Positions 9,126 through 63,230 are shown, counted from the first letter of the stretch. The stretch is 64,000 nt of DNA from Takakia lepidozioides (GCA_030704615.1 CM060731.1:56234001-56298000); one strand, 5' to 3'. Made by a program: numbers and translations. Notes: generated by a model from the letters alone, not told the origin.

Positions 9126-9131
9126 TTTATA

Positions 9132-36191: not shown

Positions 36192-36397
36192 CCTAGTTAT
36201 CATTCCGTGACGTGGCACTGACACGTCGGCCGTCACGTCCGACGTGCGTCACGTCACGTCGAATTCGGACGTTTACCCACGTAATTTTTTTTACATTTGA
36301 CTTTTACGATTTACTTCTACCCTTTGTAATGACATGGCAGCTACGGTGTAAAACAGACGTGGCCAATTATTAATATTTATTAATTTTTTTTAAAAAT

Positions 36398-37035
36398 GAG
36401 TCCGCCTATATTGGCGGTCGCATATAATTTATTATTTTTAATAAAAGTGACCGCCCATATTGGCGGTCGCCCGTAATTCATTTATTTTTAAATGAAACGA
36501 CCGCCGAAATTGGCGGTCGCCCGTAATTTATTTATTTTTAAATGAAGGGACCTCCCACATTGGCGGTCGCCCGTAATTTATTTATTTTTAAAATTGGCAG
36601 TCGCCCGTAATTTATTTATTTTTAAATGAAGCGACCGCCCATATTGGCGGTCGCCCGTAAGTTATGTATTTTTAAATGAAACGACCGCCCATATTGGCGG
36701 TCGCCCGTAATTTATTTATTTATAAATGAAAGGACTGCCGAAATTGGCGGTTGCCCGTAATTTATTTATTTATAAATGAAGCGATCGCTCATATTGGCGG
36801 TCGCCCGTAATTTATTTATTTTTAAATGAAGCGACCTCCCATATTGGCGGTCGCCCGTAATTTATTTAATTTTAAATGAAGCGACCACCCAAATTGGCGG
36901 TCGCCCGTAATTTATTTATTTTAAAATGAAGCGACCGCCCATATTGGCGGTCGCCCGTAATTTATTTATTTTAAAATGAAGCGACCGCCCATATTGGCGG
37001 TCGCTTGTATTTTATTACATTTTAAAATAAGCGGT
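36398..37035. repeat. Palindrome array GCGACCGCC-n6-GGCGGTCGC with a 50-bp period
   Basis: Copies at 36449, 36499, 36549, 36633 ... 36983, with AT-rich linkers. Confidence 0.95.
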
Positions 37036-37359
37036 CGAGTGTTTTTTTTTTCTTAGAAATCCAGGGACCCGCTGTGTGGCGTTTTGTTTTTTATTTTTAA
37101 TCATGAAGCGGCGCCTCGGCCAGCCACGGGTCAGGAAAAACGAAACAAATGGGATGGGGGGAGGTGGTTTTGAACCCTTGACCTCTCCCATGTGGGTGCG
37201 CGTGGCGAGGTGCGACTGGCTAGTCGCGCCTTTTCAAGCATAATGCCTACGAAGATACCATCCACACGCATTCATTGCTATTTTTCTGAGGTTTTGGACC
37301 CTATAGTGGGCAAAGGTTTATACAATGTCGGGGGTTGTGAGTTCAAGTTTTGGGGCGGG

Positions 37360-38035
37360 ATCCTTTGTTCCAAAATCACCCTGTTGTCTGAATCGTTGCC
37401 CCATTTTCTGTCAAGGTTCATCATGTCGTGTATTGTCTCCCCATTCCACCAGGGAGCGGAAGCAGAGTTCCAGGAATGCGATTGCTTGCTTCGTTTCCGG
37501 AAAGTGCGCAGTAAACTTGCATGGGCACTGGTGTGCATCATGGATGCTGTCCACAAGAACGGTGTCTTGTATAACGATTTGTCCCCCGACAATATCTTGT
37601 TACATTTTCCAGATGACACCGAGGGGATCAAGATTGGGGTGTGTGATTGGGGCTTAGCCACCCCATTGGGCATACGCAAAGTCTCGCCGTACCAGTTTGA
37701 AAATCAAGACAAGCTAGATCAGGAACTCGCGAAAAGATGGTGGGTGGAAAAATATATTGCATCGGTTTTCAATGCGAATGTCACGCCCTCCCCCCCCCCC
37801 CTCCAGGACATGACGTCGGAGGCCTTTGCCGTTGGGAAGATAGCGGTACGAATAAATGACCGCGTTCATTATGATCAAAGTATATTCCATGATCAATTTA
37901 CGGGAGGTTGTTGGCATTCAATGCTACAAAGGTTGTACGACAACAACAAGAATGAGATAGTCACATTAGCCCATGTAGTACTTCGGTTCATGGGCAACAT
38001 TCAATTGGCCTGAGCCGAAAGACGTATATAGGACG
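37360..38035 (+). pseudogene. Protein kinase C-lobe (TE cargo); N-lobe lost
   Basis: VHKNGVLYNDLSPDNILLHF..IGVCDWGLA..RWWV..SEAFAVG. Confidence 0.85.
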
Positions 38036-38119
38036 GAGTAGACCATAGTCTCGTAGATATGACATTTCTAGCGGTATAATGGTTCTTTTATGAAGACATA
38101 ACTCAATTTTGATCGTGCA

Positions 38120-39650
38120 TATAATAAATAAAGTCCCATTGTAAATACTACATTGCATATGCTCGACCCTGGCACCTATCATCGCAACATAAATGGTTTG
38201 TGTACTGGCTCACTGTTTATATTTGTAATGTTCCAAGGTTTTGGATAGGGTTATGAGAAAACGATATATTAGTTCCGTAGGAGATAGACAACAAACGTCT
38301 CCTCTCATTCAATTGTGCGACACTACCATGAGAGGCATGGATCGGAAAGTAATAGGTGCACATGCGACCTCTGAACGTTTGATACTAGGTCTCTACTTAA
38401 ACGTGCGGAGGTCGCATGTACACCTATTATTTTTTTATCCATGCCACTCATGGTAGTATCGCACAGTTGAATGAGATATGGAATGTTTGTTGTCCAACTC
38501 CTATGAATCCAATATATCATTTTCTCAGTACCCTGTCAGAAACATTGAAACATTCGCAGTTACAAACAGTGCCACAATACACGGCCGGTTTTGTTGAAAT
38601 GACATTTGTGAGGTTCGAGCGTATACAATTTATTATTTACAACGGAATTTTATTTACTCGGGGGACCGGTACTGCTGTTGGAGCGCAACTGATGGTGCGA
38701 GTTCTCTATTGATTGGAGCTGTCATAACCAATGTCAACAATCATATTTACGGTAAGGTGTTTCATGCTATTGTTGTTCCTCTAGCTGAATTCTGTAGTAC
38801 TCTTTTTTCTATTCCCATGCCAACGTCCTCTGAGACTGTCATGTTCAAACGGACGTATTAGCCACCCCGGCCAGCTTGCAGGCTGTAGCTATGGCCAACC
38901 ATATATTGAATGAATTGGAGATTTTGTGCGAAGTTCCTGGTTTCATGTCCGTGGTGGCTGATACGGAATTCGGAATATGGCAGTCGCAGTGGACCTGATG
39001 TTGTTGGCATGAGAGGAGCAAAACGATTCCTAAATAATTCTGCTACATGAACATCGGCAGTATGAAACACCTTGCAGTACATATGATTCTTGATATTGTT
39101 TGCACGGATTATTTGTGTTTGTGCTTTCAAGTGGCGAACATTTCCGTCATGGTGCGGAAGACGTGCATTGGCCACATTAACCGGTTGATGTGATACCATT
39201 TCACAAATGTATCACATGAACCGTTCCATGTGGCCTGCGGGAGTCTTCGATGGGTACAAGATCAATGTGGCATACGAGATCTGCTTCCACCAACAAACAT
39301 GTGATCATTTCAGAAGCGCTAGAACTTTGAAGCGACGATAGGCAAGGTTCTTCATCCAGATGTTCAACATGCTGAGGTCTTCTGTAATGTCTCTTGCTTC
39401 GTAATGAGGTGCTTCTTCAACTCTTATTTTTCCAATGCTAATATCTTCCATCTGGAACATATCCACACATGCGTATATAACTTAAAAAAACAAATGACCA
39501 TCAAAACTGGAAGCTGGCGATGAGGCTTATAAAATTGAGATGGTCATTTGTTTTTTAAGGATTTCTGCACACATATGTGGATTTGTTCCAGGTGGAGAAT
39601 ATTAACATATTGGATAAAGTGGACATGGAGAAGCACCGCATTACGAGGTA
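38120..39650. other. Three consecutive long imperfect inverted repeats
   Basis: Foldbacks at ~38120-38660, ~38690-39155 and ~39398-39646. Confidence 0.8.
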
Positions 39651-39719
39651 GGATACACTACAAAAAAAGCTTCAAAGGGCATATCATGTAACAGGTCCTA
39701 ATATAATCGAAGACAAAAC

Positions 39720-41095
39720 CTTATTCATTCAAAGGGCGATTGAATGGTTGCCCATCCAAATGATTTTTGTTTGCTTTCAATCTTTGCCACTATGATCAAC
39801 ATACCATGTATCAGGTCCCGGACTAATATCAGATCAATCGAAATTCATTCGATGGCTCAACGGATAGTTGGCCATCGAAATGATTTTGGTTCACTTTGAG
39901 ACTTGGCCACTATGTTCAATGTGCCATGTAAGAAGCCCAGAGTAATATGAGATCAATCGAAATTCGTTCAATGGGCCAACGGATGGTTGCCCATCCAAAT
40001 GATTTTTGTTCGCTTTGAAACTTGGCGAGTGTGTTCAATGTACCCTCTGATACGTCCCAGTGTAATACGAGATCAATCAAAAATCGTTCAATTGTCCAAT
40101 GAGGCGTTCACTTGTCATCTGGTTTTTGTTCAATGCGAAAAAAAAATCTTGCAATGCGTGCACGGCTATTGCACCCATTGAACGGATGTGGTTGAAGCCC
40201 CCTCATTTGCCCGCATGTGCTTGAACATGTATGCGACACATGTGCGGAGACACAACAGACGAATAAATCATTTGCCTCCCTATCGACGCGCTCCCCCCTC
40301 AAGCCATTCCACAATTTAATTGAATTTAAATTTATTTTAAGCCAATAAATAGGTTTGCATTGCCTTTCAATGGGGGTTTCTGGCACGTATCGATTTTGTT
40401 TTTGGCTCAATTTTGTTCTACGGCTTCCAGCATCCCACGGCTACTCCCCCGCCAAAATTTGGACCAATCAAAAATGCCCCAAAAAAAAAGTATTATCTTC
40501 ATTCTTTATTGCAAAACTCTCTATGAAAGAGTGCATGAAGTAAAACACAAATCAAGTTTGGAGTGCAAAACCTGTGCTTTTGGGTCCAAATGAATTTTGA
40601 TCGCTCCCAAATTTGGCACGCACGTTGCATATGGCTACGTTACACACCCCATTCAAAAACGGAATGAAAAAAAAATCGTGAGCACGCGAAACACAGTCCA
40701 ACAGGTCCCAAAGCAATAACAGCTCCAACAGAATACATTCAACGGGTGAACAGATGGTTGCCCATTCAAATCAGTTTTGTTAGCTTCCAAACTTTGCCAG
40801 CGCGTTCTAGACAACCTTTCACAGGTCCTGGACTAATATCAGATCAATCGAAATTCATTCGATGGCTCAACGGATAGTTGGCCATCGAAATGATTTTGGT
40901 TCGCTTTGAGACTTGGCCACTATGTTCAATGTGCCATGTAAGAGGCCCCAGAGTAATATGAGATCAATCGAAATTCGTTCAATGGGCCAACGGATGGTTG
41001 CCCATCCAAATGTTTTTCGTTCGCTTTGAAACTTGGCTAGTGTGTTCAATGTACCCTTTGATACGTCCCAGTGTAATATGAGATCAATCGAAATT
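39720..41095. repeat. ~121-bp tandem repeats in two duplicated blocks
   Basis: Units gatcaatcgaaattc..cggatggttgcccatcc at 39720-40100 and 40740-41095. Confidence 0.85.
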
Positions 41096-41632
41096 ATTTT
41101 GTGCTTTGAGAACTTTGTGGGTATGTTCGTAGAAATATCATAGATTTTGCGAAATGATTATGAAATACGCAGGGACCACGCGAAATTTGTTTGGAAGAGG
41201 ACCATTCATAACTCGTTATAACTTATTTGTTAACATCAATTTTCCTTGTTCTCCAGTTTTCGGAGTTCATTGCAAATACCCATATACACGTCATAACCAA
41301 ATATGACACCATTATAAATTTGTTTACAGGGTGAACTACTTCTTCCCCATCATACGAGTGTAAATGTGAAGAAAACGCTGCTCATGCAATTGAAATTGGC
41401 AGGTGCCGCACATGTGCATTGTGTATTAACAAAATTGGTGATATACAAACTTGGCGGAATGCCATCACTGTGTTTTCCAACAATATTCAAGGTACAATAA
41501 AAATGCATATTGTATATGTACTATGCTGCGAGTCATTCAAAGCCTAGTCGTCACTGTCCGAGGATGTGGAATTTGATGTTGTGGCCTGATTTGCACTGCC
41601 AATTGCCAGAGCTTGCGACCGTGATCTCGTGG

Positions 41633-43875
41633 TCAATGAGGGGCCCAATGGCATGTGATCAATTCTGGCCTGCATCCGCCTACTACTCGCGGCGAAAGTT
41701 GATTTTTTTCTTCACTCTCACGACGTGGCGGAGGTGGATCGAGAACAAGTGCTCGGGGTGCATGCAAATCGGCAACGAGGCCGTCCACATCCGGCAATTT
41801 AGCCCCCGAAACACGATGATAACGGTCTGTCCATAATCGCCTCAATTTCTCTACAACTGCCTTGATGGTACTTTTGAAACTTTCCAACTGCCTCTCGTGG
41901 GCCCTGTCCCTAATCATTGTGTCGTTTCGACGATAAGCCGCCTCGTACGCATCATTCATTCGGCGTTGACATACTATAGCATCTTCCAGTTCGGACAGCA
42001 ATAAATGTCTCCCAATCGGTTGTCGGTCATACAATTCGTTCTCCTCCAGCACCCATGGAACCTGTGGGAGCCGGATAAACCTGGACCTTCTTTGACTCCA
42101 ATGCCCTCCCAGATTGTGGCAAAACTGCTCTCTCTCCCACTAATCTCGAATACCTCCCGCATGTATGGTTATCTCCCAATCAGATGTGACCCATAATTAC
42201 TGGGGATCTTTGATGTATGTCGGGTTTCCGGCATGTATGTCATGCATCTCTCTGTCTGCATCCCATACCAAGTTCTTGCCCCAATGCACACAATTCAGAA
42301 ATGTGTATGGTAGCCCATCCAATGGGAGGTTGTGTCGATTGTATTCAAAACCTATGGGCATCCGATCCTCCAAGCCCACCAGCTCATAGAAACGGCGATG
42401 GATTGGTGTACGACATTCTGGGCAAGCGCTCGTCCGCAAGGCTTGCGGGATAAGACATGTGAGATGGAACATATGTCCATATGATCCAAGCACATGACAT
42501 CCCTCTGGACCGTATGGATTCCTACACATCGAACAAACTGTGTTATCTGATATCCATGACGACAAAACGCCTCGTGGTATCTCCTCTCTCTGGGCTGGTT
42601 TGATGTGGCTAGTCATCCTTCTTGTGGTGTCCGACTCTTCCTCTATCTCTAATTCCCAATTTATGCTTCTGTTCGACCCTAAAATTTTGTGCTCACATCG
42701 ATCGAACATAGAATCCATATCTGCCCAATTGGTATACCCGGCGAACACGCTTGATGCGATGCAGAGATCGTTATACCTTTGCATGTTGGCATAAATGTTA
42801 TCTATGCTACGGTTCGACATGCGTGCGACACGTTGCAAGCCTGACAGTGCCCGCTCTACCCGTGCTTCTCTGGAGGCCAAATGGGTCGCCCATTGTACCC
42901 AATTCTCCCAATCGCCATTCAATGGGACCCAAACCTGAATCTCTAGCGTTTTGGACAAGCGTCATGCAGTTGCCATGGCAATGTCCCGCTCCTTTGTAAC
43001 GCGGTTGACATCTAATATTGGGTTCATCTCCGATTGAATGACGACCCTCGAGCATTCCCCGGTTTTCAGTACTGGTTATTTTCCTTTCCTCCTTCTCTCA
43101 TCCGCAATTCGTTGTTCCTCAACCATGGTTTCATCGGCCACAGGGTCAAGGACGTCCGTAACTTCCTGAATGTTGAGGTCAATACTGCGATTGGGCATCG
43201 CAAACTTCGCGTCCATATCCACGACGTTTGTTCGATCCTCATTGTGGACAACAGTGCCTTCATTGTTTGGAGGCATGTATTGCAATGTAGCTTCCAACTC
43301 GGCTATGCGCAGTGTTTGCCAGTCTAGTCGGTCCTGCAGGGTCCTGATTCGCTGGTTTCTTTCCGCCAGTTGTTCCTCTGACATTGTATTCCGAACGTGT
43401 CCGGGATGTACTCCAAATCGTATAGCAACCTTGCGTTCCTCCTACTAGCAGTTTGCCAATTCACTGGACGCAAAAGTATGACCTCCACTTACAACATGGC
43501 TGCCAAGGTATACGGGATTTGACCCTTTAAGAGAGGTTGATCCCACAATGTGCAATGCACCTCATTCGCCCTATGCTGGAAATGCAAGTTCGTGCAAGAT
43601 CTGGACTCTACGTAATTGTTTCGGGTTTGCACGTCAAGCCTATCCAAAGGCCACAATCGATTGATGTGGTACCATTTCACGAATTTTTTGCATCTCGCCA
43701 TCGGCCACCGGAACTCTTCCGGAACATCCTCCCAGCCCTCTTCTGCTAGTATGTTAGGGTCACCAAATACTTCCCAATTCAAGTCTTGCCTTGACCCTTT
43801 AATTTTCTTAGGGGGCGGTCCATGTTCATTGGGGTCATCTCTTCCATGACGGTCATCGTCCTGGCCCTCTGCCAT
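41633..43875 (-). pseudogene. RING-H2 finger protein (TE cargo), broken into several ORFs
   Basis: CSMC..GSYGHMFHLTC..CPECR (third Cys replaced by Tyr); N-terminal PPPKKIK; coiled-coil-like segments. Confidence 0.75.
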
Positions 43876-44237
43876 TCTACAACAATCGGAGCAACACTAA
43901 ACGAGGTTTTCTAAAAAGATGTAACTCTAAACCCTTTCCCCGTTAAGTAGGTTTGAGTAAGTGTCAAAATACTTCCTAAAAGCTAATTTGAAGAATAAAA
44001 TGATCCTGGAAGCCAGATGAGGGCCTATAGGAGCACTTTCACAGAAATCTCGGCAAAAAATACCCCCCACCCAACCAATGGCCTCCTTCGCCACGTGACT
44101 ACATGTCGCGGAATAATGAAATGCCACGCATACAGAAGTTGTGTGGAGAGGAAGGGAGGGAGACTAAGCCTCCCTTGGCTTATATCCCCCCCCCCCGCCT
44201 TCATTTCTCGGGCCACGTGCAGGGCGAATCTTCTAGA

Positions 44238-45912
44238 ACCGACCGCCAACTTGGCGGTCGCTCGTTTTTCGGAAAATAAAAAAATAAGCAACCGCCAGAA
44301 CTGGCGGTCGCTCCATTATCCACGGAAAAAAAAAAAAAAAAAAATGACCGCGAGAACAGATGGTCGCTTCATTTTCCGGAAATAAAAAAAATAAACGACT
44401 GCCAACATAGGCGGTCGCTTCATTTTTTAAAAATTAAAAAAAATAAGCGACCGCCAGCAATTGGCGGTCGCTTCATTTTCAAAACATTTAGAATAAATAA
44501 GCGACTGCCAACATAGGCAGTCGCTTCATTTTCAAAAACTTAAAAAAAATAAGCGACCGCCAACATAGGCGGTCGCTTCATTTTCAAAAACTTTAAAATA
44601 AATAAACGACCACAAACATAGGCGGTCACTTCATTTTTAAAAAAATTTAAAAAATAAGCGACCGCCAGCATAGGCGGTCGCTTCATTTTTAAAACATTTA
44701 AAACATTTAAAATAAGTAAGCGACCGCCAACATAGGCGGTCGCTGCATTTAAAAATAAATAAATAAAATAAGCGACCGCCAGCATAGGCGGTCCATTCAT
44801 TTTCAAAACATTTAAAATAAATAAGCGACAGCCAACATAGGTGGTCGCTTCCTTAAAAAAAAATTTAAAATAAATAAGCGACCGCCAGCATAGGCGGTCA
44901 ATTCATTTTCAAAACATTTAAAATAAATAAGCGACCGCCAACATAGGCGGTCACTTCATTTTCAAAAACTTTAAAATAAATAAGCGACCGCCAACATAGG
45001 CGGTCACTTCATATCAAAAAAATGGAAAATAAAAAGCGACCGCCAGCATAGGCGGTCGCTTCATATTGAAAACATTGAAAATTAATAAGCTACCGTGAGC
45101 ATAGGCAGTCATTTCATTTCTAAGACATTTAAAATAAATAAGCGACCTCCAGCATAGGCGGTCGCTTCATTTTCAAAACATTTAAAATAAATAAGCGACC
45201 GCCAACATCGGCGGTCGCTTCATTTTCAAAAACTTAAAAAAAAAAAAAAACGACTGCCAATATAGGCGGTCGCTTCATTTTCAAAATATTTAAAAAAAAA
45301 AAGCGACCGCCAACATAGGCGGTCGCTTCATTTAAAATAAATAAGTGACCGCCAGCATAGGGGGTCGCTTCATTTTCAAAATATTTAAAATAAATAAGCG
45401 ACTGCCAGCATAGGCGGTCGCTTCATTTTCAAAACATTTTAAATAAATAAGCGACCGCCAACATAGGCGGTCGCTTCATGTCCAAAATAATTAAAATAAA
45501 AGCGACCGCCAGTAATGGCGGTCGCCCCATTTCCAAAAATAAAAAAATAAAAGCGACCGCGGTCGCTGCATTTTGTAAAAACAAAAACTGCCAGTAATGG
45601 AAGTGAGGGGAGAATGATAGGAGGCTTATATCCCCCCCCCCCCGCCTGATTCCTCGCTCCACGCGCAAGGCGGACCTCGTAGAAGCGACCGCCACCATGG
45701 CGTTTGCTCTAGTTCGTCAAAAAAAAGAAAAAAAAACGACCGCCAGTAATGGCGGTCGCCGCATTTATAAAAACAAAAAAAAACTTTAAGCGAAGTGAGG
45801 GGAGAATGTCCTGGAGCTTATATGCCCCCCCCCCCCCCCCCCCCCCGCCTCACTCCTCGCTCCATGCGCAGGTCACACTTCGTAAAAGCGACCGTCACCT
45901 TGGCGGTCGCTC
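44238..45912. repeat. Palindrome array GCGACCGCC-AACATA-GGCGGTCGC with a ~53-bp period
   Basis: More than 20 copies, e.g. 44931, 44984, 45037. Confidence 0.95.
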
Positions 45913-46183
45913 CATTTAAATAAAAATGAATGCACAGTTGGAAGCATGGCACAATTGTTCTCCATTCCACAAACAAATCACCGAACACAAACATGAGCAA
46001 GTGACGGTGCCTTTGGCCGACATTTTGGCTGGTATACACATGGGCAACATCTTTATTTTCCAACACATACACAACAACAATACAAATATTCATAGTGACA
46101 ATGATCACATTGGTATTACTTCAGTACAAAAATATAAACATGTCCACTAAAAAGTGCTGATGCATGCCTACAGCTGTTTTGCT

Positions 46184-48070
46184 TCAATTCCTTCTACTGC
46201 TTCGACGGCGGGACGAAGAAGATCCTAATCCTAATGCTCCGATGGGTTGAAAATCCGGGTCACCCTCGACTTCACTACCGTTGTCATGATCAGTGCTGGA
46301 ATCGTCATCCCTATCCGACCTCATATGTCCAGGCCTTTGAATCTGCAAGCGACCTCGAACCACATTTAGTTCTCTTTGAGGTCGACTCCCGCTCCGGTCT
46401 TGAATACTATCCACGGTATCTGGCCTGTTTGTGGGCCGATCGCCTACAAAAGGTTGGACTATTCTTTGTCGTTTATGGACTTGGGACGCAATCGAAGGTG
46501 GTCTCGAAGGAGGTACCGGAGGGGAGACCGACATTAGATGGTCCGGCATGTGAGGAAGCACGGGTCTACTGTGCAACACGTCGGTTAAGGTGGAATTGTA
46601 GTGGCAGGTTGTCATCATCTGAGGCTTCAACTTCCGCCCGGTCCAATGCAGCAGAATGATGCATGCGTGTGGAAAATAAATCAACCATGTTGCTCCTTAA
46701 TGCCCGCTGTGTTGATGGGAAGCTGGATCGGTTTTGGTATTGTGGTGGAGTTGGTCGTATCGGTGAGACATGATCCCGTCCCGTCGACTGTACAATGGGT
46801 TCGACACCATCATTTATATGAACAGGGTTGCGTACGTCGATCGGTCCTGGCAGTACATCACCCATAAGCTCCATTGGGGCACTACCGGTGGCTTCAGCAT
46901 GTAGTGGGGGGCGAGGGTCGACCCCAACTTCATTTTGAGGACCATGTTCTGGGGATGACACAATTGCAGCTTCACCTTCATCTGCGATACGCACTTCTTC
47001 AAGAAGGTCATCAAAGGTCGGCTGGATATAAGCATCATCCTCTGTGAATGTAAACGGGTCATACGCATTTTCGGGGGCATCATCGGATCCATCTTCACTA
47101 TCGGAGGCAAATGATTCCCTCTGAGATGATTCTCTCTGAGGCTCAGTATCGTCACTCATCGAATCAACCTCAGAAGCAGACCGCCTTCCGACCTGTTCGA
47201 TGAAGTCCGTCAATAGTTGGTATTGATAACGTCTATCTTTCTGCTCGCCGCTAGTGTCGACCGATCCCAAGAATTGTTCCCCAGCTGGACATACGAGCAT
47301 GACATTGAACAACGGTCTATTTGTGACATAACTCCAACCATCGACACATATAGTGCTTCCATATTTTCTGATGCACTCGTCCGTCCTATCGTTGACCTTT
47401 TGGATAAACTCGGTCATGACGTTTTCTAGCAATCCTGTGCGGAGATTGTGATAAGTCGGAGGCACGTACGTGGATCTGGATTCCGAAGTTGCTCTAACAG
47501 CAGAAACAAATGTCGGAACCCTTGCCACATTAAATGATATGTTGGCCTCGAAGAAAAACTGCGCCCATTTTTTATCCAACTGTCTTTTCGCAGTCAAGTT
47601 AAGACCTTCTTGCATGGATTGCTGCCGTAATCCTCTACTCCATTGAAGTGTAGGGGTATAAAGAGGTGTTGAAGCAGGTGTTGCTCCGGCACAACCCACT
47701 TGTCCATGGACACCCGAAGCCTCACAAGAGTCGCCCTGGATACTAATCGGGGCATCCTGACGGGAAGATGAAGTGTTCTGCTAAGAGGTCATGTCCAGAT
47801 TCAAAGACATTGGAATATTGCCTCCACACTGGGTAAAGTGGCTTTTTACCCGCATAGATGCTTTGGGGCATAAACCCACCCCATCGCTCTTCACACCTTT
47901 ATAGCCGAGGTGAGCGAGCAACCGATCTTTACGATAATAAAGCTTTAATCCACATAGGTTGCACTCAACACTAATAGTGACACTGACAGTATTCGGGATT
48001 GCCGTATACCAAGGGCTTCATTCCTCCCTCATCTTCACCCAATATCCACTCCCCTGGGACCTAGCGATGC
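46184..48070 (-). pseudogene. hAT transposase (BED finger and DUF659), internally deleted
   Basis: VECNLCG..RLLAHLG..LCP; WAQFFFEANISFNVA..PPTYHNLR..CVDGWS..FLGSVDTSG..IEQVG, then a jump to an acidic tail; no hATC domain. Confidence 0.88.
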
Positions 48071-48464
48071 AAGCAACAAAAAACAGTCACCTATAAATGA
48101 ACGTGTTGTGAATGTAGAGTGCAATACGATAGCCCAACACTTTTACACCTGTCAGCAACCCAAGTGGGTCGATGTGGGTTGTAGTGTTGAGCTTATACAC
48201 AATATGCTGAAGTGGCTTTGGTGGAAGCCACAACGGCAAAAGGTACGCTCCCTCCTCTTGGACTACACTCTCGTTCAATGGAAGAGAACATCCAAAGCAA
48301 CCTCAAGTGTTTGCGCCAAAAGAAGTGAGGAACTTGATGACCCTCCTCCCTTATATGTGATTCCAAGAGGGATGAAAGTGAAACGAAAGTGAAATGAATA
48401 AATGACGAACCAATAGCGCCCACCCAAAAAAGGCCGTACAATCATATTTGTTGTAATTTTGAAA

Positions 48465-49662
48465 TTAAGCGACCACTAATACTACGGTCCGTATTTTTAT
48501 TTTTTATGAAAAACAAGCGACCGCCACTACTGCGGTCGCTTTTATTTCCTTTCATTTTGTGCAATATTGCAGTCACTTCTATTTTGTATATTTTTAAATT
48601 TAAGCGACCGCCAAGATAGCGGTCGCTATTTCTTTTTTTTAATTCGAAAAATAAAGCGACCGCTAGTGCGACCGCCAATCTTGCTTTTATTAAAAATAAA
48701 TTTGAAGCGACCGCCAATATGGCGGTCGCTATTTCTTTTTCTATTTCGAAAAATAAAGCGACCGCCAATCTTGCTTTAAAAAAAAACAATTGAAGCGACC
48801 GCCAATACGGCGGTCGCTATTTCTTTTTTAATTTTGAAAAACAAAGCGGTCGCGTTCATTTTGTTAATTTTCAAAATTGTATTTGCCACCGTGCGACCGC
48901 CAATACGGCAGTCGCTTGTTTTCTTTTTTAAATTAGGCGACCACCAATCTTGTTTTTTTAAGACAATAAATTGAAGCAACCGCCAGCATAGCGGTCGCTA
49001 TTTGTTTTTATAATTCGAAAAATAAGGCGACCGCCAGTGCGACCGCCAGTGTTGCTTTAAAAATATATATATTTGAAGCGACCGCCAATATGGCGGTCGC
49101 TATTTCTTTTTCTATTTCAAAAAATAAGGCGACCACCAGTGCGATCGCCAATCTTGCTTTAAAAAGAATAAAAATTGAAGTGACCGCCAATACGGCGGTC
49201 GCTATTTCTTTTTTAATTTCAAAAAACAAAGCAACCGCCATAATTGGCGGTCGCGTTCATTTTGTTAATTTTCAAAAATGTATTTGCCACCGTGCGACCG
49301 CCAATACGGCAGTCGTTTGTTTTCTTTTTTAAATTAGGCGACCGCCAATACGACTGCCAATCCTGTTTTTCTTAAAAATAAATTGAAGCGACCGCCAACA
49401 TAACGGTCGCTATTTATTTTTTTAATTCGAAAAATAAGGCGACTGCCAGTGCGACCGCCAATCTTGCTTTGAAAAAAAAATATTTGAAGCGACCGCCAAT
49501 ATGACGGTCGCTATTTTTTTTTCTATTTCGAAAAATAAGGCGACCGCCAGTGCGACCGCCAATCTTGCTTTAAAAAAAATAAAAATTGAAGCGACCGCCA
49601 ATACGGCGGTTGCTTTTTCTTTTTTTATTTCGAAAAACAAAGCGAATTGGCGGTCGTGTTCA
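48465..49662. repeat. Palindrome array GCGACCGCC-AATAC/T-GGCGGTCGC with half-sites
   Basis: Repeated full and half palindromes 5' of the transposase. Confidence 0.93.
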
Positions 49663-49849
49663 ATTTGTTAATTTTCAAAATGTATTTGCCACTGCCACCA
49701 TGTCGGCGACGTGGCTGCTTAAGTGGCAGTATTTTACCTGGTACTATTTTTACCAGAATATTCCCCGAACCTGACGTGACGGAGGTCCCGTCAGCGTTAG
49801 GTCTGACGTGACCTGACGCTGACGGACGGACGTGACGCTGATAACCGGG

Positions 49850-52800: not shown

Positions 52801-53142
52801 CATCCCAGAATTAAGGAAATCCATGCTGAGCTGAGAAGATTGTCTGGGAAGATGAAAGAGGCGGGGTATGTGCCTGACAGACGCTTTGTATTGCATGATG
52901 TGGGGAGGAAGAAAATGATTTTCTCTTTGCCACCACAGTGAGAAGCTGGCCATTGGTTTTGGGCTGATCATCATGACCCCTAGGACGCCTCTCCGTCTCA
53001 TCAAGAATCTTCGAATGTGTGGTGACTGCCACACCTCCACCAAATTCATCTCAAAGATTGTTGGCCGAGCAATTGTTGTACGGGACGTTAACCGCTTTCA
53101 CCCTTTGAAGATGGGATTTGTTCTTGTGGTGATTACTGGTGA
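49850..53142 (+). pseudogene. Scrambled PLS-PPR-E-DYW pseudogene, 3' part
   Basis: Many frameshifted P-L-S triplets; [46 protein letters not shown] ending at 53142. Confidence 0.92.
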
Positions 53143-53884
53143 AAGGATGTCTTCTTGGAAAGATGCGAGTGTCTTGCTTCATTCATTGATCTGTGACTTA
53201 GCTACTCACACCATCCACCATTTCCCGAAAGTATTGACCATGATGTACTGTTGAGTGCATTTCCTGTGCCATAAATCCACATGAAATGATAGTGGGGTCT
53301 ACCCGACATAGGTGGGAAGTCGGCCCATAATTGCACTTGACTCAAGGGGTGATTTTTGACTGATTCTGGTGACAGTGGATGGAAATCAGAGTGTTGTCCT
53401 AATTATGGGTTTGGGTGGTGGAGCTTCTCCAAAGCTTCAAGATGGAAGTGAACACGAATTTTAATGAGCTTGATGAGAGGGGCAGCCCTGTGCACAAGTT
53501 TGTTCAGCATCTTAAATTTGAACATGTGTTTGTTTCTCGTGGTGTGGTTTTGGATGGAGCCCTTGATGAACTTGCATGAATATTGTCAAAAGCTAGCCTT
53601 GATCCAATCCCATGGTGGATGCTTGAAAGTTCATACAGTGAATGTAAGGGTATTTGGGTATGTTGTTATTGATTGATGCGGCTTGTGAAAATTGAATGTT
53701 GAAATGCAGATCTGCCATTTTTCTTCCAAAAAAAAAAAAACACGGGATCTCTGCATGTACCACCGTGGGGTTGACCCAGCCCTTTTTTTGTGAAAAATTG
53801 AACATAGTTCTCAGAATTCGTCGCTAGTAGTGCGGAGCAACGCGAAGCCCTAGTTATTTTTCAGAGATGATACACCAATAAATT

Positions 53885-54108: not shown

Positions 54109-57100
54109 CGAGAAGAAAACCTATATACATATTAATTATGGAAACATGTTTCCAGTTTTATAATCTATTTATCCACCCTGTGGGGACCATGTTTCCCTAC
54201 ACTGACATGGTCCCCCGAGTAACTCACTAAGTTAAGTACAAAAATAGAAGGGCAACTTATCATTAAGGGGCTTGCCTCCATTTTTTATTTATTTTTCACT
54301 TTTACAGTTAGTGCTAAAAAAGGGCGTTGACTCTCTCTAGCGTCTAGACCCAGGGGGGGAATAGCAACTAGGGAGGGTCCAGAACACAAACGGGAGCACA
54401 ATGATGTCATCACTTGCACCGGTCAACTTCCCTTTAAAGCTCTCCAATATTTTTGCATTAGTCTTTAATTTAAATTGAAAAGTGTCATTTGAGGAACTTG
54501 CCTAGGTTAGAAGTAGTACACAAAGTGTGCCTCCCAACTTTGTATTGTAAAATTGCATCTTTAAATGTACTGGTTCGTTTTCTAGGTCGAGTTCCTATCT
54601 TTACTGAACCCTGTGTGTGTGCCTCAAGGTGTCAAGGGGTTTTAATTTCCCCAAATAATCCCAAATAAGTAATTCAGGGCCTCCGGCCCTGAATTTCCCA
54701 TAAAGTTATATCAGGGCCACTGTCCCCTGTTTTTGTTTTTTTGTTTGTTTTCCTTCCCTGTAAGAGAAAAAGAAAGAATGTATCCAATAGCAAGTGGTTG
54801 GTGACGCCATGATGGCATGCCACACCTGCAAAGCGGCTTTCTCCCTCTGCTCCTTGTGTAGCGAACAAGGAGTCATCAATGATCATACTTTAAGGTTTTA
54901 ACGCGTCCCTCATCACACCGCCACATGGCACAGACAAAGGCCCGATTAAGGTGACCTTACCAAAGTCAACAAGAACATGAGGGTTGGATCTGCTTGCTAC
55001 CCTACTACGTCATACCAACTGTAATGCTGAGGTTGGATTTACCACGTGGCACCTGATCTTGGCTCCAAACTGAGAATACACTCTCTCATAAATGAGCCCA
55101 TATTTCACGGGGTATGATGTGGCACGTGGGGCTGGGTGTTTGCGTGGTGCAGCCCGGCCCGGTCCACCGTCCGCCGTGCCATGTGCATCATCGCATACTT
55201 CCAACGGCATCTCTTGCCCACCCTTATGCAATACCATACATGAACGCCATCCCATACCATTATGCCACGCATTAGTAAAGAAAATATATTTTATTATATT
55301 CTTGAATATAGATAGCATATTGTTATACCGACATACATTATATTCATGTAATCTTTTATAATTCAGGGTATAAAACAAGCGGCTAGTCGCGTAATGGCTC
55401 CACCCTAATTTTTAATTTCGCGACCTAATTACAAAATTGGAATGCTAGCATTGGCTGTCCTTATCTATTTATTTTATTTAAAAACAAATTAAAACATACC
55501 ATCAGCACTGACAATTGCTTGTCCCCCATGATAACAATTGATTATGATTATTTTATTATGAGTATGATTTTAAAAAAATATGAATTTTAGAATCAAAAGA
55601 TTTTGTGTTTACACCTTGACAGAAAATAACACTATTAACTTTAATGCAATGAACAAATGCGAAAAGATAACACTGAATGTGATGGTGTGAGGTCTGGATT
55701 CCTACCTACCTATCTTTTGGGCATGGATGAATGATTATGAGGATGACACAGGATGCGCGCTCGTTGAGTATTGCGGATGACAGATGATAGAAGCAGGATG
55801 AACTGAATAGTTGGTTTTCGGATGGACGAGGTTAGAATAGCCGTTACGTATTAAGCCCCGGTACAGCTGGATGTATTAAGTTGGTGTTGTCTTTAGTTAA
55901 CAGTTAGATTAGGATTAGGATTAGGTGAGGTGGCTTGATTGTGTGGCCTAACTAGGAAGGCATCTGGACAACCAATGAATGGAGGCCGTTTGGCCTAGAT
56001 TAGATAACATGCTTAGATACTATATAATACGGTTTTCCTAAGCAAAAGGGTGGTGGATTTTATCACAGATCTTGTTGCGCACCTCACTTCGGTAAGCTCC
56101 CCTTCATGTACTCGCTTTGATGCACGCGCCTAACTCCTAAACTGGCCGCCGGGCCAACTCGGAGCTTCGGCTGCTCACTGGGACATAACGGTCCCCCTTT
56201 GCTTCTCCACAAGACCCTTGCTCACTTTGGGCCTAGTGGAAATTCCTTTTGGTTGTTGGCAGTCCGGAACAGCTCGCTACACCTTGGTCGTTTTCCGGCT
56301 CACACGCTTACTTACTAGTTTTTGGTCACCAACGGGCTTGCACCGTTCTCGGGGTTACTATTCCAGGCTATATATACTTCTGTGACTGTCCGCGGGGGTT
56401 TCACAAACAACCCAGTCATTTTATGGCGAACCACCACGAAGACCCTCGATTCCCTGTGATGAGTCGCGGTGAGTCTTGGCCCACCTACCACGGCCCCATT
56501 GGACCGTGATGAGTCCCAAGACTCCCCACGACTCCCACCACAAGGTCTCCGCCCCATGGTGAGTCATATGCCATCCCCACTAAGACCCACTAAGCTACCA
56601 CCACCCCTCGTGGAACCACCCCTACTGCAACCTGGTGTGCGGGGCTCCACCTAGTGAGCGCCTCCGCCTCCTTGAGTGCCTTGGGCATTCAAGGGTGCTT
56701 CAGCCCCCGTACCTATTGTTGCCACTGCCCCCACCACAGGGGCAACCCCTCTTGTGTCCCGACCCCCTGCCCTCAAGGCAAAGGGCCGCAACACGCACCC
56801 CTACCAACAGGAAGTCGATGTCCTCATCGACTTGTCCATTTTGTAGAAACTAACATCCAAGTTGTGGCGTCCCACATCAAGGAGTTTGTTTCCGTACCAT
56901 GGCGTCCCATAGTAAAGAACCAAACCCCCACTTGACTCTCTACTCCCTAGCTAGTTTGGCCGACTTCCTCCAAGTCCCGGCCAAGGGTGGAGCCTCTCCA
57001 GCTCCACCTAGTGCACTCTTCTTGGCCTACTTCAAGGCCAAGGAACGATCCTCCCCGAGGATCGAATCGCCTTACTGCAACAACATTGCCTGCGACCGCT

Positions 57101-57357
57101 CATGATGCCGCTTCTTGGTATCACCTTGAGCAAGGGCTCACCTTGAACCTTTTTTTACTAGGAAGATAACCTTGAACCAACCGTGCGCCCCAATCACTAT
57201 AATTGGGTCCGCCTTGGAATGCTAGCCTGAGGTACGGGAACACGTCGACGCCGCACTACGACTTCGTCTCGAGGTTACACGATTATAGTACGTGAACGGA
57301 AGCACGTAGCTTCCGCGTTAGTCCGCACTACAAGCGGGTCGTTTTTGTTTTTGGTTT

Positions 57358-58058
57358 GTGCAAATTTGTGTTGATTCTATCTGCTGCATGCAATGGCGTC
57401 TCCTTCCTACTCTGAGTCGCTGTTTCCTGAGATCACTCTTGAGCTCAACTTTGAGCTTACCTTTTTACATGAATTGCGACATCTGCAAATACGCTCCTGT
57501 TGATGCCAAGGAACCCTGGACATGTGAAGAGATCGTGCTGGACACTCCCTCTGATTACTGGATTGTCAAGTTCGAGGAGGAGGCCGCTGAGGAGGCAACG
57601 AAAGTAGTAACCATTGCCGCTCAAAAGCGTAAGCAAAAACGTAAAGTGGACAAGGCACTGCAAGGGGCTTTGGCTGGGAAGTTGCTGCAGGAACTGCATG
57701 CGGAGGAGATTGCTCAAAGAATTCTATTTCAGTACTCAAACAACGTATGAGTGCTGGTGAACGATTTAGCTGGGCAGAAGTGGGTGTTCCTAAGTTTATT
57801 GTCTCCCGTGAGATTGACCGTGACTTGGAAAGCTTCTCGTATCCCAACAGGCCCAGTCCTTTGTGGCTCTGGGAATTTGTCAAGGGTGACACCGCTATTG
57901 TGTTTGCAAATCTTCGTGAGGCTAAGGTTACTGCTGCTGTTGCTGATCCCAGCTGGGAAGAGGTAGTAGTTGGGGTGCTCGAGCAATGTCCTAGTTGCAA
58001 ATTTGGACGTGATGTGGCGTTGACGGGTCAACGTCACGTCCGACGTTACTGTACATAA
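57358..58058 (+). pseudogene. Unknown cargo ORFs inside the LTR element
   Basis: Two abutting ORFs with CxxC motifs and a basic helix; no family recognised. Confidence 0.35.
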
Positions 58059-58097
58059 TTATGTTTATTTATTTTACTTTACTAGTGACTATTTACT

Positions 58098-58896
58098 ATG
58101 AGAACCGACGTGACAACCGATGTGGCCTCATAACGTGGATTTAACGACGAGTGTTTGGCAGTGAAGTTCCAGCATCCGGGTGTTATCTCATATTTTGCTG
58201 TGAATGCACGTGAAGTAAAGGGTTACACTCTCTGGTGGAATGGGGGGACAAAACGCGACATGATGAACCGTGACAGAAAATGAGGCAACGATTCGGACAA
58301 CATGGTGATTTTGGAACAAAAGGGAACAGAAGCATAGTTCCAGGAATGCAATCGCTTGCTTTGTTTCCGGAAAGTGCGCAGTAAACTTGCATGGGTACTG
58401 GTGTGCATCATGGATGTTGTCCACAAGAACGGTGTCCTGCACAACGACTTGTCCCCCGACAACATCTTGTTGCATTTTCCTGCTAGCACCGAGGAGATCA
58501 AGATTGGGGTGTGTGATTGGGGCTTAGCCACCCCATTGGGCATACGCAAAGCTTTGTCGTACCAGTTTGAAAACCAAGACAAGCTAGAACGGGAACTCGC
58601 GAAAAGATGGTGGGTGGAAAAAGATATTGCATCGGTTTTTAATGCAAATGCCACGCCCGCCCCCCCAGGACATGACGTCGGAGGCCTTTGCCGTTGGGAA
58701 GATAGCGGTACGAATAAATGGCGGCGCTCATTATGATCAAAGTATGTTCGAGGACCAATTTACGGGAGGTTGTTGGCATTCAATGCTACAAAGGTTGTAT
58801 GACAACAATAAGAATGAGAGAGTCATATTAGCCCATATAGTACTTCGGTTAATGGGCAAGCCATTCAATTGGCCTAAGCCCGAAAGACGTATATAG
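58098..58896 (+). pseudogene. Protein kinase paralog B (LTR cargo)
   Basis: NDECLAVKFQHPGVISYF..YTLWWNGG; HNDLSPDNILLHF; CDWGLA; frameshifts. Confidence 0.87.
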
Positions 58897-59116
58897 GACG
58901 GAATAGACCATAGTCTCGTAGATATGAGATTTGTGGCGGTACAATCATTGACCCGTTGTACACTGTCACTCTTCAAGATTCGTGGGTGTGGTGTTTGATT
59001 ATCCCATATGATGGATCCAGGTGCCATGGCCAAGTAACAAACCATTAAAACATGATGGTACGAGACAAACACAATTGAAAACAACATTTATTCAAACATG
59101 ATGTACAGTCAAAGGT

Positions 59117-60330
59117 CTACAAGTTTTTATCCATCCTCCAGCAATTTTTGGGCTCAGGCCAATTGAATAGCCCCATCATGAAACGCTTCACAACATTTTC
59201 TAGTTTGTATCGCAACTCTACTGTGTTTACACACAAGTTTTCCAGAGCCGAAGCAAAACATGTTCCAGTAGACATATCGTTGAGTAGGCTTGCATCGAAC
59301 ATGTTACCCCCATTTATTGCCTGGACTATCTTCCCAATTACAAAGATCTCTGATGGCATGGTTAGAGGGGGCATACGAGGTGTGCCATGTGACTGGTTGT
59401 TGGCTACATTATGAACAATTGCAATTTCAGGTGCAATCCACCATCTATGTGCGAGAGTCTTTATCATCTTGTCTCTGCTCTCGAAAATGTACAACGTGGT
59501 TTTTGGGTCATCCGTCGTGGAGGCCATCCTCCAATCGCATACCCCGATGTACACATCTTCAGACCCTTGTGGAAAATGCAACAAGATGTTGTCGGGGAAC
59601 ATGTCGTTGTGCAAGAGGTGGTGATTATGGACGTTGAGCATAATGTGCAAAAGTGCCCATGCCAATTGGGTGCGATTTCTGTCGGAATTGAATCAGTCGG
59701 TTGACCTCCTACATTTCCTGCTCCGTCCCCCGTCGTTCCATTAACTCCCTGTTATCCCGATCATTCCCCCATTTCCTGTCAATACTCAACCATGATCATA
59801 TAATCCCCCCATTCCACCAATGTGTGTAACCTTCATTTCGACGTGGATGCAACGCAAAATACTTTATAATGCCAAAATGATGGAACTTTACAGCCAACGC
59901 CTCATTGTTATGTTGGACTTTGGCAAGCTCAACATTTGTTTCCCTGGGCGTTTTCCCTGCTAACTCCCAGGACGGAGAAATGAATTGATCCCCAACAATT
60001 CTAACCCTCCGAATTGTACCATACCCTCCCTGTTTGGGCGCGTCGAGTTATTGTACCTATGCGTTTGTGGATATGTATCTTACTTTCAATGCCGCATCCG
60101 TGGACGAGGACCCTGCCTTCCATGTGAGTGGTTTCGTACGTCGTTTGGCGTGGGCCTTTGCCATGTCAGACCACCAATCCACAAGCACAAACAATTCCTC
60201 CTCCGAAGTTGGCATGTAACCTTCAGCTACAGGTGTTATCGTAACAAACTTGTCCATAGTTTGCCTCAGATTCCATGTGGAATCATGGGCCCGAACCTCC
60301 ATTCATTATCGGAAAACTAAACCCAGATTA
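59117..60330 (-). pseudogene. Protein kinase paralog A, near full-length (LTR cargo)
   Basis: QGGYGTIR (G-loop), WELAGK, NEALAV, WWNGG, HNDMFPDNILLHF, CDW, WWIAPE; N-terminal DSTWNLRQ domain. Confidence 0.88.
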
Positions 60331-60654
60331 TTGATAACCTTATATATTAGCGGACCAATTTCCTCACCCTCTATTGGTATAGTACCCAAAGCAAACTGTC
60401 TCCCGCAGTCCCAGGAAAAAAAAAGCAAAAACTCCTCCCCCACACAAATACTTTCTCCCCCCCCCCCCCCCCCCACGGCTCAGTCCTGGCCACCGAAGTT
60501 GAAACTCCAAGAAGCCCCAGAACCGCACTCACAGAGAGGAAAAAAAGTGGGTTGGGAATGGGGGGTAGGCACTTATGTACTACCTAGAGAGGCCTGCCTG
60601 GAGCGGCGCACGACCGCCTCTGCTGCCCATTTGCGCCTCGACACGTGTCCAGGT

Positions 60655-60940
60655 AACGGTCGCACATATGGGTGGTTGCACCTAATAACAAAACAAAAAA
60701 ACTGTTGCGACCCCCCCCTACTGGTGGTCGCACCTTTTTAAAAACAAAACGAAAATGTGCGACCCCCCCTAAGCGGTCGCACTCAATAACAGAAAAGAAA
60801 AATTCTGCGACCACCACCGGCTGGTGGTCGCCATTTAAAAAATAATTAAAAATGTGCAACCACCCCTTGCTGGTGGTCACACCCAATTTAAAAAAAAGAA
60901 AAAATGTGCGACTACCCTTTGCTTGTGGTCGCACCTATTA
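60655..60940. repeat. Short palindrome array TGCGACC-n-GGTCGCA, about 5 copies at ~50-bp spacing
   Basis: Copies at ~60706, 60758, 60806, 60855, 60907. Confidence 0.8.
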
Positions 60941-61328
60941 AAAAAAATTGAAAATGCTGCACTCATTTAAAAAATAAGTAAAATTGACGCAGTTATAGTA
61001 CGCACACGCGCCGGGTGCGCACTAGCATGTGAACTCCCAAAGAAGGCGCAAGTTTCCTTGCCCCTTGGATGGGAGTCACCCGATTTCGGCGCAACACACG
61101 ATTAATCCAATTTACCTCTGCCACTTTTGTAAGGTAGCATGCATTCTACACACTAGCCAACCATACCATGCATCACCATTCCAAACAAAATAGGAAGCAC
61201 AATATTTGGAAACCATTTCATTTATAACAAAATTTGTACAACACAAGTTTTTGCAATCGGATCCCTGAGCTAGCTAAGCAGGATTAAACATGCATTTCCT
61301 TCCCCACGATCCCAGGTTGATGTCCCCA

Positions 61329-61710
61329 TCAATGTTTATTCCGCTTTTGAGGTCGTCTTTCCAAAACTGCAACCGCCTCAGATCCGTTTCCCATTTCTGA
61401 GGCACGCACCCAAGTTGCCTCCACTTGATGATAGCCCTTCCATTTCACGAGATACTCCGTTTCTCGATTCTTGAACCTCCTCGATTTAAGCACTGCCTCC
61501 ACCTCGTACTCAGGTTCATTTTCATGATCCAACAACACAGGTGGCGGACGCAACACTTGATGCCGATTCGGACGCGCTTCATCTTTGAAGTAAGGCTTCA
61601 AAAGGGAAACGTGGAATACAGGATGCACCTTGCTGTTTGCCGGCAGCTCCAATTTATACACAGCCTCATTTATAACCTTTCGGATGCGAAAGGGCGGGGC
61701 CGACCCCATG
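61329..61710 (-). pseudogene. Integrase C-terminus plus chromodomain
   Basis: PFRI..VYKLELP..VHPVFHVSLLKPY..YEVEAVL..YLVKWKGY..ATW. Confidence 0.92.
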
Positions 61711-62684
61711 ATGAAGCCGATCTCAAGGACGATCGTGTACTGAACTCTAAGCTCTGATATCAAGTGTCGCGCACCTCACTTCGGTAAGCTCCCCTTCATG
61801 TCATAGTTACTCGCTTTGATGCGAGCGCCTAACTCGCAAACTGGCCTTCGGGCCAACACGGAGCTTCGACTGCTCACCGGGACATAACGGTCCTCCTTTG
61901 CTCCTCCACAAGACCCTCGCTCACTTTGGGCCTAGTGGAAATTCCATTTGGTTGTTGGCAGTCCGGAACAACTCCCCACACCTTGATTGCTTTCCGGCTC
62001 ACACACTTACTCACTAGTTTTTGGTCACCAACGGGTTTGCACCGTTCTCGGGGTTACTACTCCCTACATATACTTCTGTGACTGTCCGTGGGGGTTTCAC
62101 AAACAACCCAGTCATTTTATGGCGAACCACCACGAAGACCCTCGATTCCCGGTGATGAGTCGCGGTGAGTCTTGGCCCACCCACCACGGCCCCATTGGAC
62201 CGTGATGAGTCCCAAGACTCCCCACGACTCCCACCACAAAGGTCTCCGCCCCATGGTGAGTCCTATGCCACCCCCACTAAGACCCACTAAGCTACCACCA
62301 CCCCTCGTGGAACCACCCCACCGCAACCCGGTGTGCGGGGCTCCACCTAGTGAGCGCCTCCGCCTCCTTGAGTGCCTTGGGCATTCAAGGGTGCTTCAGC
62401 CCCCGTACCTATTGTTGCCACTGCCCCCACCACAGGGGCAGCCCCTCTTGTGTCCCGACCCCCTGCCCTCAAGGCGAAGGGCCGCGACAGATCTTGTACG
62501 GTGTACCTCTGATGTGACTGGATATGTGTATGAGTGTTTGGATGAATGTGAATTGGTGAGGTTTATCTTTGTGCTAGGTTCCATCCTATCAAGCGGGTCA
62601 CTGCCCTACTGTGCTACAACCCTCATACCTCCCTCATACTGGTAATACCGAACTAAAAGGGGGAATATATCCCCGGCCCCGAAT

Positions 62685-63230
62685 TTTTGGTGGAGATGTT
62701 GTCTAAACGCCTTTTCTGGATTTTTGGACTTGGGTTTTTTTCCCGCTAGCTCCCAACGCTCCGGTATTTTAGAATCACCAATAATCCTACACTGACGGAC
62801 CTTAGCATACCCTCCTTCTTTGTAAGGGCCAATCTCTTCCACTTCGCAGTAGAGTTCAGATAATAAAGACCAGTTGTGCCTCCCCAACCGGATGACCCCG
62901 CTTTTCAAGGGACAACCCTAGTCCGGCGATGTGAATTCTAATTTGCCGAGCAAGCCCAATACTCAACATGTCGCATTAACTCAGCTTCGGCGGAGGGCAC
63001 TTGACCCTCGGTTGTTCTACCCTTCCATGTCTTCATTAGCTGCCTCAAATTCCACGTGGCGTCTTTCGCCCTGCTTTGGATCCACCGATTGAACCTCGTC
63101 TTGTCCCTGTTCGCCGTCCACTTAACCCCCGCCAAAGAGTTCGTCATTTTCCTCTCCATTTTTTGCTGAAAAATCTGAAACCCCACCCATCCATGCCTGA
63201 CATAAGCACTCTCCAGCCTCATCATGTCCC
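62685..63230 (-). pseudogene. Protein kinase paralog C, N-terminal domain and N-lobe only
   Basis: DATWNLRQ..; KEGGYAKVRQC..WELAGKKPK; truncated just before the outer PPT. Confidence 0.82.

Follow-up and report, generated by a model that had tools for sequence, protein, structure and literature searches.

A 64,000-nucleotide stretch of Takakia lepidozioides DNA (GCA_030704615.1, CM060731.1:56234001-56298000; here, the window) contains four copies, A to D, of one divergent eukaryotic-type protein kinase family. We think that these are probably one native copy (A) of a hAT DNA transposon together with dead hAT-derived fragments nested in retrotransposon debris, and not functional cargo exchanged between transposon classes. 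An initial annotation of the same DNA had proposed that the kinase rides in three unrelated transposons, the hAT and two long terminal repeat (LTR) elements, but our results do not support a kinase traded among them. According to the explanation we favour, all four copies would be dead remains of an accessory kinase gene belonging to a giant hAT lineage that encodes the kinase, a large RING-H2 protein and a DUF659-type transposase. Copy A would stand in its native place within a decayed 13.7-kb hAT, while B, C and D would be hAT-derived DNA, with C and D still headed by a palindrome array and B a truncated fragment of the A-type subfamily. These three copies would have ended up in or next to the LTR remnants of a transposon graveyard as a result of nesting, deletion and aberrant repair. 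The window copies pose a concrete question for a genome-wide test: do accessory modules move from one transposon class to another?

Four broken copies of one kinase family

Copies were searched for by tblastn of four candidate open reading frames (ORFs) against the window, by three-frame read-outs and with a hidden Markov model (HMM) built from 16 full-length relatives. The search yielded exactly four copies in 64 kb, as the initial annotation had counted, and every motif that it quoted was located. The copies are:

37364-38013, plus strand: kinase copy A, HMM span 268-485, of which the surviving C-lobe is HMM 299-485, plus an inverted 93-bp piece; 5'-truncated
58134-58945, plus strand: kinase copy B, HMM span 239-494; 5'-truncated, with two stops and one frameshift; antisense to the LTR element described below
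59120-60302, minus strand: kinase copy C, HMM span 106-498; nearly full length (WNLRQ domain, N-lobe and C-lobe); sense relative to the LTR element
62609-63369, minus strand: kinase copy D, HMM span 49-238, legible by eye to about 262; N-terminal WNLRQ domain and first half of the N-lobe

No copy (0/4) retains an uninterrupted reading frame over the whole kinase domain, owing to stops, frameshifts, truncations and one 93-bp inversion. The frame of copy C is broken several times by stops and frameshifts, and copy D has a frame break between 62941 and 62917 and ends after 'YEGG'. Both WELAGK and WNLRQ are found in C and D. WWNGG occurs in B and C, and also in A on the inverted piece, where it reads WWNGE on the opposite strand (37364-37456); H/YNDxxPDNILLHF and IGVCDW are present in A, B and C. 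Copies B and C retain HND..N and CDW, and the catalytic His of copy A is changed to Tyr (YND). Amino acid identity is 82% between A and B, 43-48% between either of them and C, and 51% between C and D over 41 residues, which agrees with the earlier view of an old family of diverged paralogs.

The DNA homology of copy B to copy A is confined to 717 bp (58228-58945), which are 90% identical, and B starts in the middle of the gene. The ratio of nonsynonymous to synonymous substitution rates (dN/dS) between the two is 0.48, a value drawn from 40 differences only. Copy A is the derived form relative to B, because it carries the 93-bp inversion and lacks the first 94 bp of B. The inversion is clean (37364-37456 against 58228-58320), sits at the 5' breakpoint of copy A relative to B, and is a scar of the type left by aberrant gap repair. 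Moreover, the A/B subfamily (37486-37995 and 58356-58860) reads WWVEK(Y/D)I where the family has a near-invariant WWVAPE, of which copy C keeps the APE; judging by these residues, the A/B lineage may have lost its activity before A and B diverged. We also considered D and B as the halves of one split gene. Their HMM coordinates (238/239) abut, yet D runs by eye to about 262 and overlaps B, and the idea was rejected.

A decayed three-gene hAT holds copy A

The closest intact relative of the kinase is P0009 (494 aa), encoded on L006, a 17.1-kb contig from an unrelated metagenome. Further proteins encoded on L006 include a RING-H2 protein of 1039 aa and a transposase of 966 aa, the latter with the domains DUF659 and Dimer_Tnp_hAT. 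Copy A, as had been annotated, lies within a hAT bounded by a target site duplication (TSD) and terminal inverted repeats (TIRs), with a DUF659 ORF inside it. The parts of this element are:

36192-49849: decayed 13.7-kb three-gene hAT; 8-bp TSD CCGACCAC at 36184-36191 and 49850-49857; TIRs CCTAGTTATCA / CCCGGTTATCA
36359-37092: palindrome array upstream of kinase A, 50-bp period, GCGACCGCC N5 GGCGGTCGC
41978-43839, minus strand: RING-H2 accessory gene remnant, homologous to residues 13-165 and 517-896 of the 1039-aa L006 RING protein
44253-45910: palindrome array upstream of the RING gene, 53-bp period
47166-48017, minus strand: hAT transposase remnant, residues 7-307 of the 966-aa L006 transposase, DUF659 kept
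48517-49656: palindrome array upstream of the transposase gene, about 102-bp period

The TIRs agree at 9 of 11 positions and CCGACCAC is present on both flanks, that is, an 8-bp TSD next to short TIRs. When the L006 proteins were compared with the window by tblastn, all matches fell within 36192-49849 (kinase, 1.8e-31; RING, 6e-57 and 2e-23; transposase, 2e-57), so that homologs of kinase, RING protein and transposase lie together inside one TIR-bounded element. The transposase remnant has neither the RNase-H-like catalytic core nor the hAT dimerisation domain. Since only residues 7-307 with DUF659 remain, the window hAT is a decayed, non-autonomous member of its lineage.

The element splits a PPR-DYW gene (35751-36191 / 49850-53251), whose E and DYW domains lie at about 52493-53251 with a degenerate-looking DYW end; this gene is probably a pseudogene or was disrupted by the hAT insertion. 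Elsewhere in the window, at least five GGTTATCA motifs are clustered at 24800-24950, among them an exact copy of the hAT terminal sequence CCCGGTTATCA at 24843; an inverted pair lies at about 24908-24941. This cluster may mark a lone hAT-like end, or it may belong to the subterminal part of a different element.

The hAT lineage beyond the window

The organization of the window hAT recurs in L006. Palindrome arrays of L006 lie at 631-857, 5934-6195, 7677-7890 and 15773-16080, and the arrays upstream of each gene in both elements share a GCGACC/GGTCGC core (palindromes of the GCGACCRCC type, with CGGTCGC at the core). The termini are also related, CAGGGTTACCA in L006 against CCYRGTTATCA, both with ACGT-rich subterminal motifs. 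Within the contig the L006 termini (430-540 and 16120-16205) read CAGGGTTACCA... and ...CAACCCTG, and their 8-bp flanks do not match (AATAAAAG against CTTCATAC); the contig may be chimeric or its ends rearranged.

A scan of metagenome contigs gave 80 kinase loci, corresponding to 49 distinct groups, many of them on contigs of 20-124 kb; the contigs of P0010, P0011, P0012 and P0014 were short and gave no gene context. A transposase or RING homolog was found nearby at 12 of the 49 distinct loci and at 10 of the 17 with 10 kb of upstream sequence, at a distance of 2-10 kb. In the kinase tree, hAT-linked copies fall in two distant clades, and the window copies group with the hAT-linked L006 and L012. 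Ten recurrent ORF clusters near the metagenome kinases matched no Pfam families.

Gene order differs by clade. It is kinase (+), RING (-), transposase (-) in the window, kinase (+), RING (+), transposase (-) in L006, and transposase (+), RING (+), kinase (+) in L035 and L037 (L037 and L038 were compared). It looks as if each array-headed gene is a movable module inside the hAT. In L006, a 343-aa gene (4701-5732, minus strand) and the N-terminus of the 1039-aa RING protein (8281-11400, plus strand) share an N-terminal domain of about 140 aa; both proteins match the window at 43396-43839, and the domain, which corresponds to no Pfam family, is also found in L012.

Cut-and-paste elements of the hAT superfamily are thought to need only a transposase, and to our knowledge classical hATs encode nothing else. 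In the literature that we searched, we came across no hAT that has its own kinase or RING gene. The lineage resembles other members of the superfamily (Ac/Ds, Tam3, hobo and the DUF659-bearing hATs of plants and fungi) in its 8-bp TSD, short TIRs and ACGT-rich subterminal motifs, and in the DUF659 and hAT dimerisation domains of the transposase of the intact relative L006. It differs from them in the size of its elements (14-17 kb), in the additional conserved kinase and large RING-H2 genes, and in the phased palindrome array that heads each gene.

A very divergent kinase under purifying selection

Full-length members of the family have about 495-570 aa. In an intact protein of about 500 aa, a basic patch resembling a nuclear localization signal and an N-terminal helical domain (about 120 aa) accompany a complete kinase domain. 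An exhaustive HMMER search of 1.84 billion proteins returned 290 representatives at E<1e-3 and 84 at E<1e-10. Pfam Pkinase scores are weak, at or below the gathering threshold. In an alignment of 13 members, all hallmarks of eukaryotic protein kinases (ePKs) are invariant: the FAGK Lys, the alphaC Glu, HND..N, CDWG, APE and the Arg of subdomain XI. By alignment position, K212, E231, H327-N328-D329, N334, D352-W353 and R467 are invariant and P387-E388 near-invariant, so the ePK catalytic residues are in place at the family level. The aligned members also share the basic N-terminal patch and a helical N-domain holding a 'WN' motif.

The AlphaFold2 model of P0009 (pLDDT 79.3) shows a helical N-domain and a bilobal kinase fold. 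Against the PDB, Foldseek gave at least 500 kinase matches, with probability 1.0 for all 50 of the 50 shown and TM-scores, by target, of about 0.56-0.67; identity in these matches is 12-15% and no specific kinase family stands out. A profile search of the PDB reached E ~1e-5 at best, with CaMKII on top, and the Atlas cluster closest to the family, from Streptophyta, is an unnamed 'protein kinase domain-containing protein'. The family thus has in common with the ePK superfamily the beta3 Lys, the alphaC Glu, HxD..N, DxG, APE, the subdomain XI Arg and the predicted fold. It differs in its low identity to solved kinases (12-15% at most), in having members below the Pfam gathering score, in its own helical N-terminal domain, in a catalytic loop that reads HNDLSPxN (Ser for Lys) and in CDWG at the DFG position. 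We conclude that the family is genuine, very divergent and not an ordinary host kinase; to judge from the conserved residues and the predicted fold, it is probably active.

Between intact distant copies dN/dS is 0.12-0.24, which indicates purifying selection, and between close copies it is 0.4-0.9. Together with the value for A against B, this is the expected pattern for a gene selected in an active transposon lineage and decaying after each insertion. It is unusual for a hAT lineage to have kept a kinase and a RING-H2 (E3-like) gene of its own, under purifying selection, in distant plant genomes; the kinase/E3 pair suggests that the hAT manipulates proteins, its own or those of the host, for instance in silencing, in DNA repair or in the turnover of the transposase. 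The intact kinase could well be nuclear and act during transposition, phosphorylating the transposase of its element, the RING partner or a host factor, and the shared palindrome arrays would then co-regulate the three hAT genes; we put this scheme forward tentatively, as possible rather than probable.

These data bear on whether the copies simply come from an ordinary family of host kinases, pieces of which transposons captured and which then decayed without selection. Each of the four copies in the window is a pseudogene, and the dN/dS of A against B, with its few differences, would suit such an origin. On the other hand, the family has few members, of atypical sequence; a hAT transposase and a RING gene accompany the kinase in independent genomes; the gene has no introns, transposon arrays stand in front of it and no host-gene context was seen; and the intact copies are under purifying selection. 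We regard a host-kinase origin as extremely improbable. The initial annotation had called the gene a TE-specialised cargo kinase. The specialisation stands, given the rarity, the atypical sequence, the hAT linkage and the purifying selection of the family; a role as exchanged cargo is not supported, the kinase being a regular gene within a single hAT lineage.

Copies B and C inside an LTR element

The location of copies B and C in an inner LTR element was annotated correctly: both lie within a TSD-flanked element at 56073-62489, which has the following features:

56073-62489, minus strand: non-autonomous chromovirus-type LTR element; 3' LTR 56073-56793 and 5' LTR 61765-62489, 95.1% identical, with TGT..ACA ends
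56068-56072 and 62490-62494: 5-bp TSD GATCT
61751-61762, minus strand: primer binding site (PBS)-like site TGATATCAGAGC, which follows the 5' LTR
61332-61703, minus strand: integrase C-terminal SH3 domain and chromodomain (Pfam Chromo 1.2e-11, SH3_Tf2-1 1.6e-11), the sole pol remnant
60671-60956: 52-bp-period palindrome array directly upstream of kinase C, GTGCGACCACC N4-5 GGTGGTCGCAC, with the hAT-array core
about 56794-56806: purine-rich run resembling a polypurine tract (PPT), adjoining the 3' LTR

The PBS-like site matches at 11 of 12 positions the sequence TGGTATCAGAGC, which we take to be the consensus of a tRNA-iMet-type PBS. Together with the LTR pair with TG..CA ends and the 5-bp TSD, this identifies an LTR retrotransposon. 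No gag, protease, reverse transcriptase/RNase H or integrase core was found in 56073-62489; only the SH3 tail and the chromodomain are left, and the element is non-autonomous. The stretch from gag to the integrase core has been deleted, because the integrase SH3/chromodomain begins about 40 bp past the PBS-like site. This element shares an LTR pair, a TSD, a PBS, a chromodomain integrase tail and foreign DNA between chromodomain and PPT with Ty3/gypsy chromoviruses of the nested or non-autonomous kind, and with LTR elements in which additional ORFs separate pol from the 3' LTR. It differs from them in that gag-pol is missing and the foreign DNA consists of hAT-type arrays and two dead kinase fragments in opposite orientations.

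The LTR-linked copies are best read as nested or rearranged hAT DNA, because B is 90% identical to A at the DNA level and C keeps a hAT-type array. Over the whole 64-kb window, enrichment of the core of this array is confined to the three hAT arrays and this site. As the upstream arrays presumably lie outside the kinase mRNA, the units were most likely acquired as DNA and not via reverse transcription of a kinase transcript. For B and C within the TSD-flanked element, nesting suffices, without any exchange of functional cargo.

A candidate for such a nested block is 57364-61248, a DNA-transposon-like segment that holds the array, C and B. It is flanked by an 8-bp repeat, TTGTGCAA / TTTTGCAA (7/8), and has a terminal inverted repeat, ATTTGTGTTGA / ACTTGTGTTGT (9/11). 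A systematic scan for an 8-bp TSD with an 11-bp TIR gave it as the sole candidate bracketing array, C and B, with none in 20 shuffles and an analytic expectation of about 0.04. If the block were absent, the joined target site would read ...GGTTTGTGCAA|TCGGATCC..., and the chromodomain stop would stand about 650 bp from the 3' LTR, a normal spacing. We consider this nested element only tentatively, the case being weak, as its termini are not of the lineage type C..RGTTAYCA. Besides the kinase genes themselves, no long inverted repeats bracket the B/C block. The ORFs flanking B, C and D matched no Pfam families, and an Atlas search with the ORF at 57322-57747 gave no usable match.

The same block could also be a DNA transposon from a different family, non-autonomous and with an 8-bp TSD, that captured pieces of two distinct hAT kinase genes, one in each orientation, and then inserted into the LTR element. 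Its TSD/TIR pair is indeed not of the hAT-lineage type, the two kinase fragments belong to different subfamilies and stand tail to tail only 175 bp apart, and the flanking 770 bp have no recognisable coding content. A patchwork of gene fragments in both orientations between short inverted termini is what Pack-MULEs and other Pack-type captures look like, with the difference that here the pieces derive from the gene of another transposon and not from host genes, and the termini are a weak candidate. With a TIR matching at 9/11 and a TSD at 7/8, a chance expectation of about 0.04 and two ends that share no subterminal repeats, we judge a capture of this kind very unlikely.

Copy D and the supposed outer LTR element

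Copy D had been placed just before the PPT of an outer LTR element. Directly upstream of this kinase copy there is another array:

63243-63564: 95-bp-period array of two palindromes, GGGACTTAGCC..GGCTAAGTCCC and TTCCAGTTC..GGAACTGGAA

In the 64-kb window there is no second copy of the supposed outer LTR, nor any relative of the D flanks; a real 5' LTR would lie beyond base 64000. Upstream of D (63459-63916) no integrase/chromodomain or other Pfam match was found, and the codons that the supposed PPT GAGGGAGGTATGAGGG overlaps ('YEGG') can still be aligned with the kinase. With no partner LTR in the window, no pol domain near D and a 'PPT' overlapping kinase codons, this placement is not confirmed, and the existence of an outer LTR element cannot be shown in the window.

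The kinase might nevertheless be true LTR cargo, if one or two chromovirus-type families had taken array and kinase from a hAT as DNA into the slot between chromodomain and PPT and then copied them by retrotransposition. C, in sense orientation, and B are inside a TSD-flanked LTR element, and D, also sense, ends at a purine run followed by TG. What speaks against it, besides the lack of a second outer LTR and of a pol domain near D, is that B is antisense, truncated and of another subfamily than C, that the candidate 8-bp TSD suggests a later, DNA-level insertion, and that every copy is broken. Furthermore, a chromovirus integrase/chromodomain tail was found at 0 of the 80 metagenome kinase loci, and a pol motif scan gave 1 match in the 837 kb around the metagenome kinases, both tests being insensitive to decayed copies. 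DNA homology between the 53-64 kb part of the window and the 80 loci was limited to two short kinase-coding matches, with none to the LTR element. We find true LTR cargo unlikely. Since B and C are dead and bear hAT signatures, the outer LTR is unshown and the integrase was found at none of those loci, the notion of three unrelated transposons exchanging a kinase between TE classes is not supported. Nor does the sequence favour what the initial annotation had named as refuting it, an ordinary single-copy host kinase evolving neutrally inside TEs, in view of the hAT/RING linkage in independent genomes and the selection on intact copies.

Several observations nonetheless weigh against our explanation of B, C and D as nested hAT debris. 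Neither a lineage-type hAT terminus (C..RGTTAYCA) nor an ACGT-rich subterminal region was found beside the array of copy C; no such terminus lies near B or D either, the only matches in the window being the hAT ends and 24843. The ends of the candidate 57364-61248 share no subterminal motifs, and its TSD/TIR pair is marginally significant and of non-lineage type. The two LTRs that enclose B and C have an intact 5-bp TSD in common, so that both copies could have been present at the last retrotransposition of the element. The array of copy D is built from palindromes unlike those of the hAT arrays. About half of the context-bearing metagenome loci show no hAT gene within 10 kb. Finally, C and D are both sense, and on the minus strand each stands immediately before the boundary of an LTR or of an LTR-like sequence, the pattern that a recurrent cargo slot would give. 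Because of this shared position there is room for array-headed hAT kinase units having been taken up more than once into the chromodomain-PPT slot of LTR elements and spread by reverse transcription, which we hold to be quite unlikely. If it were true, an accessory gene of a DNA transposon, together with its cis-regulatory array, would be a module moving between transposon classes.

Other features of the window

An intact 877-aa PPR ORF at 16798-19431 (plus strand) also matches the Transposase-associated domain (PF13963, 1.7e-15), with no separately significant stretch, and this match may be a repeat artefact. At 11101-13343 (minus strand) there are two long ORFs (393 and 356 aa) with no Pfam family; a gag-type CCHC knuckle, CFSCGMLGHMCNEC, lies at 12710, and the two ORFs may represent a retroelement gag.

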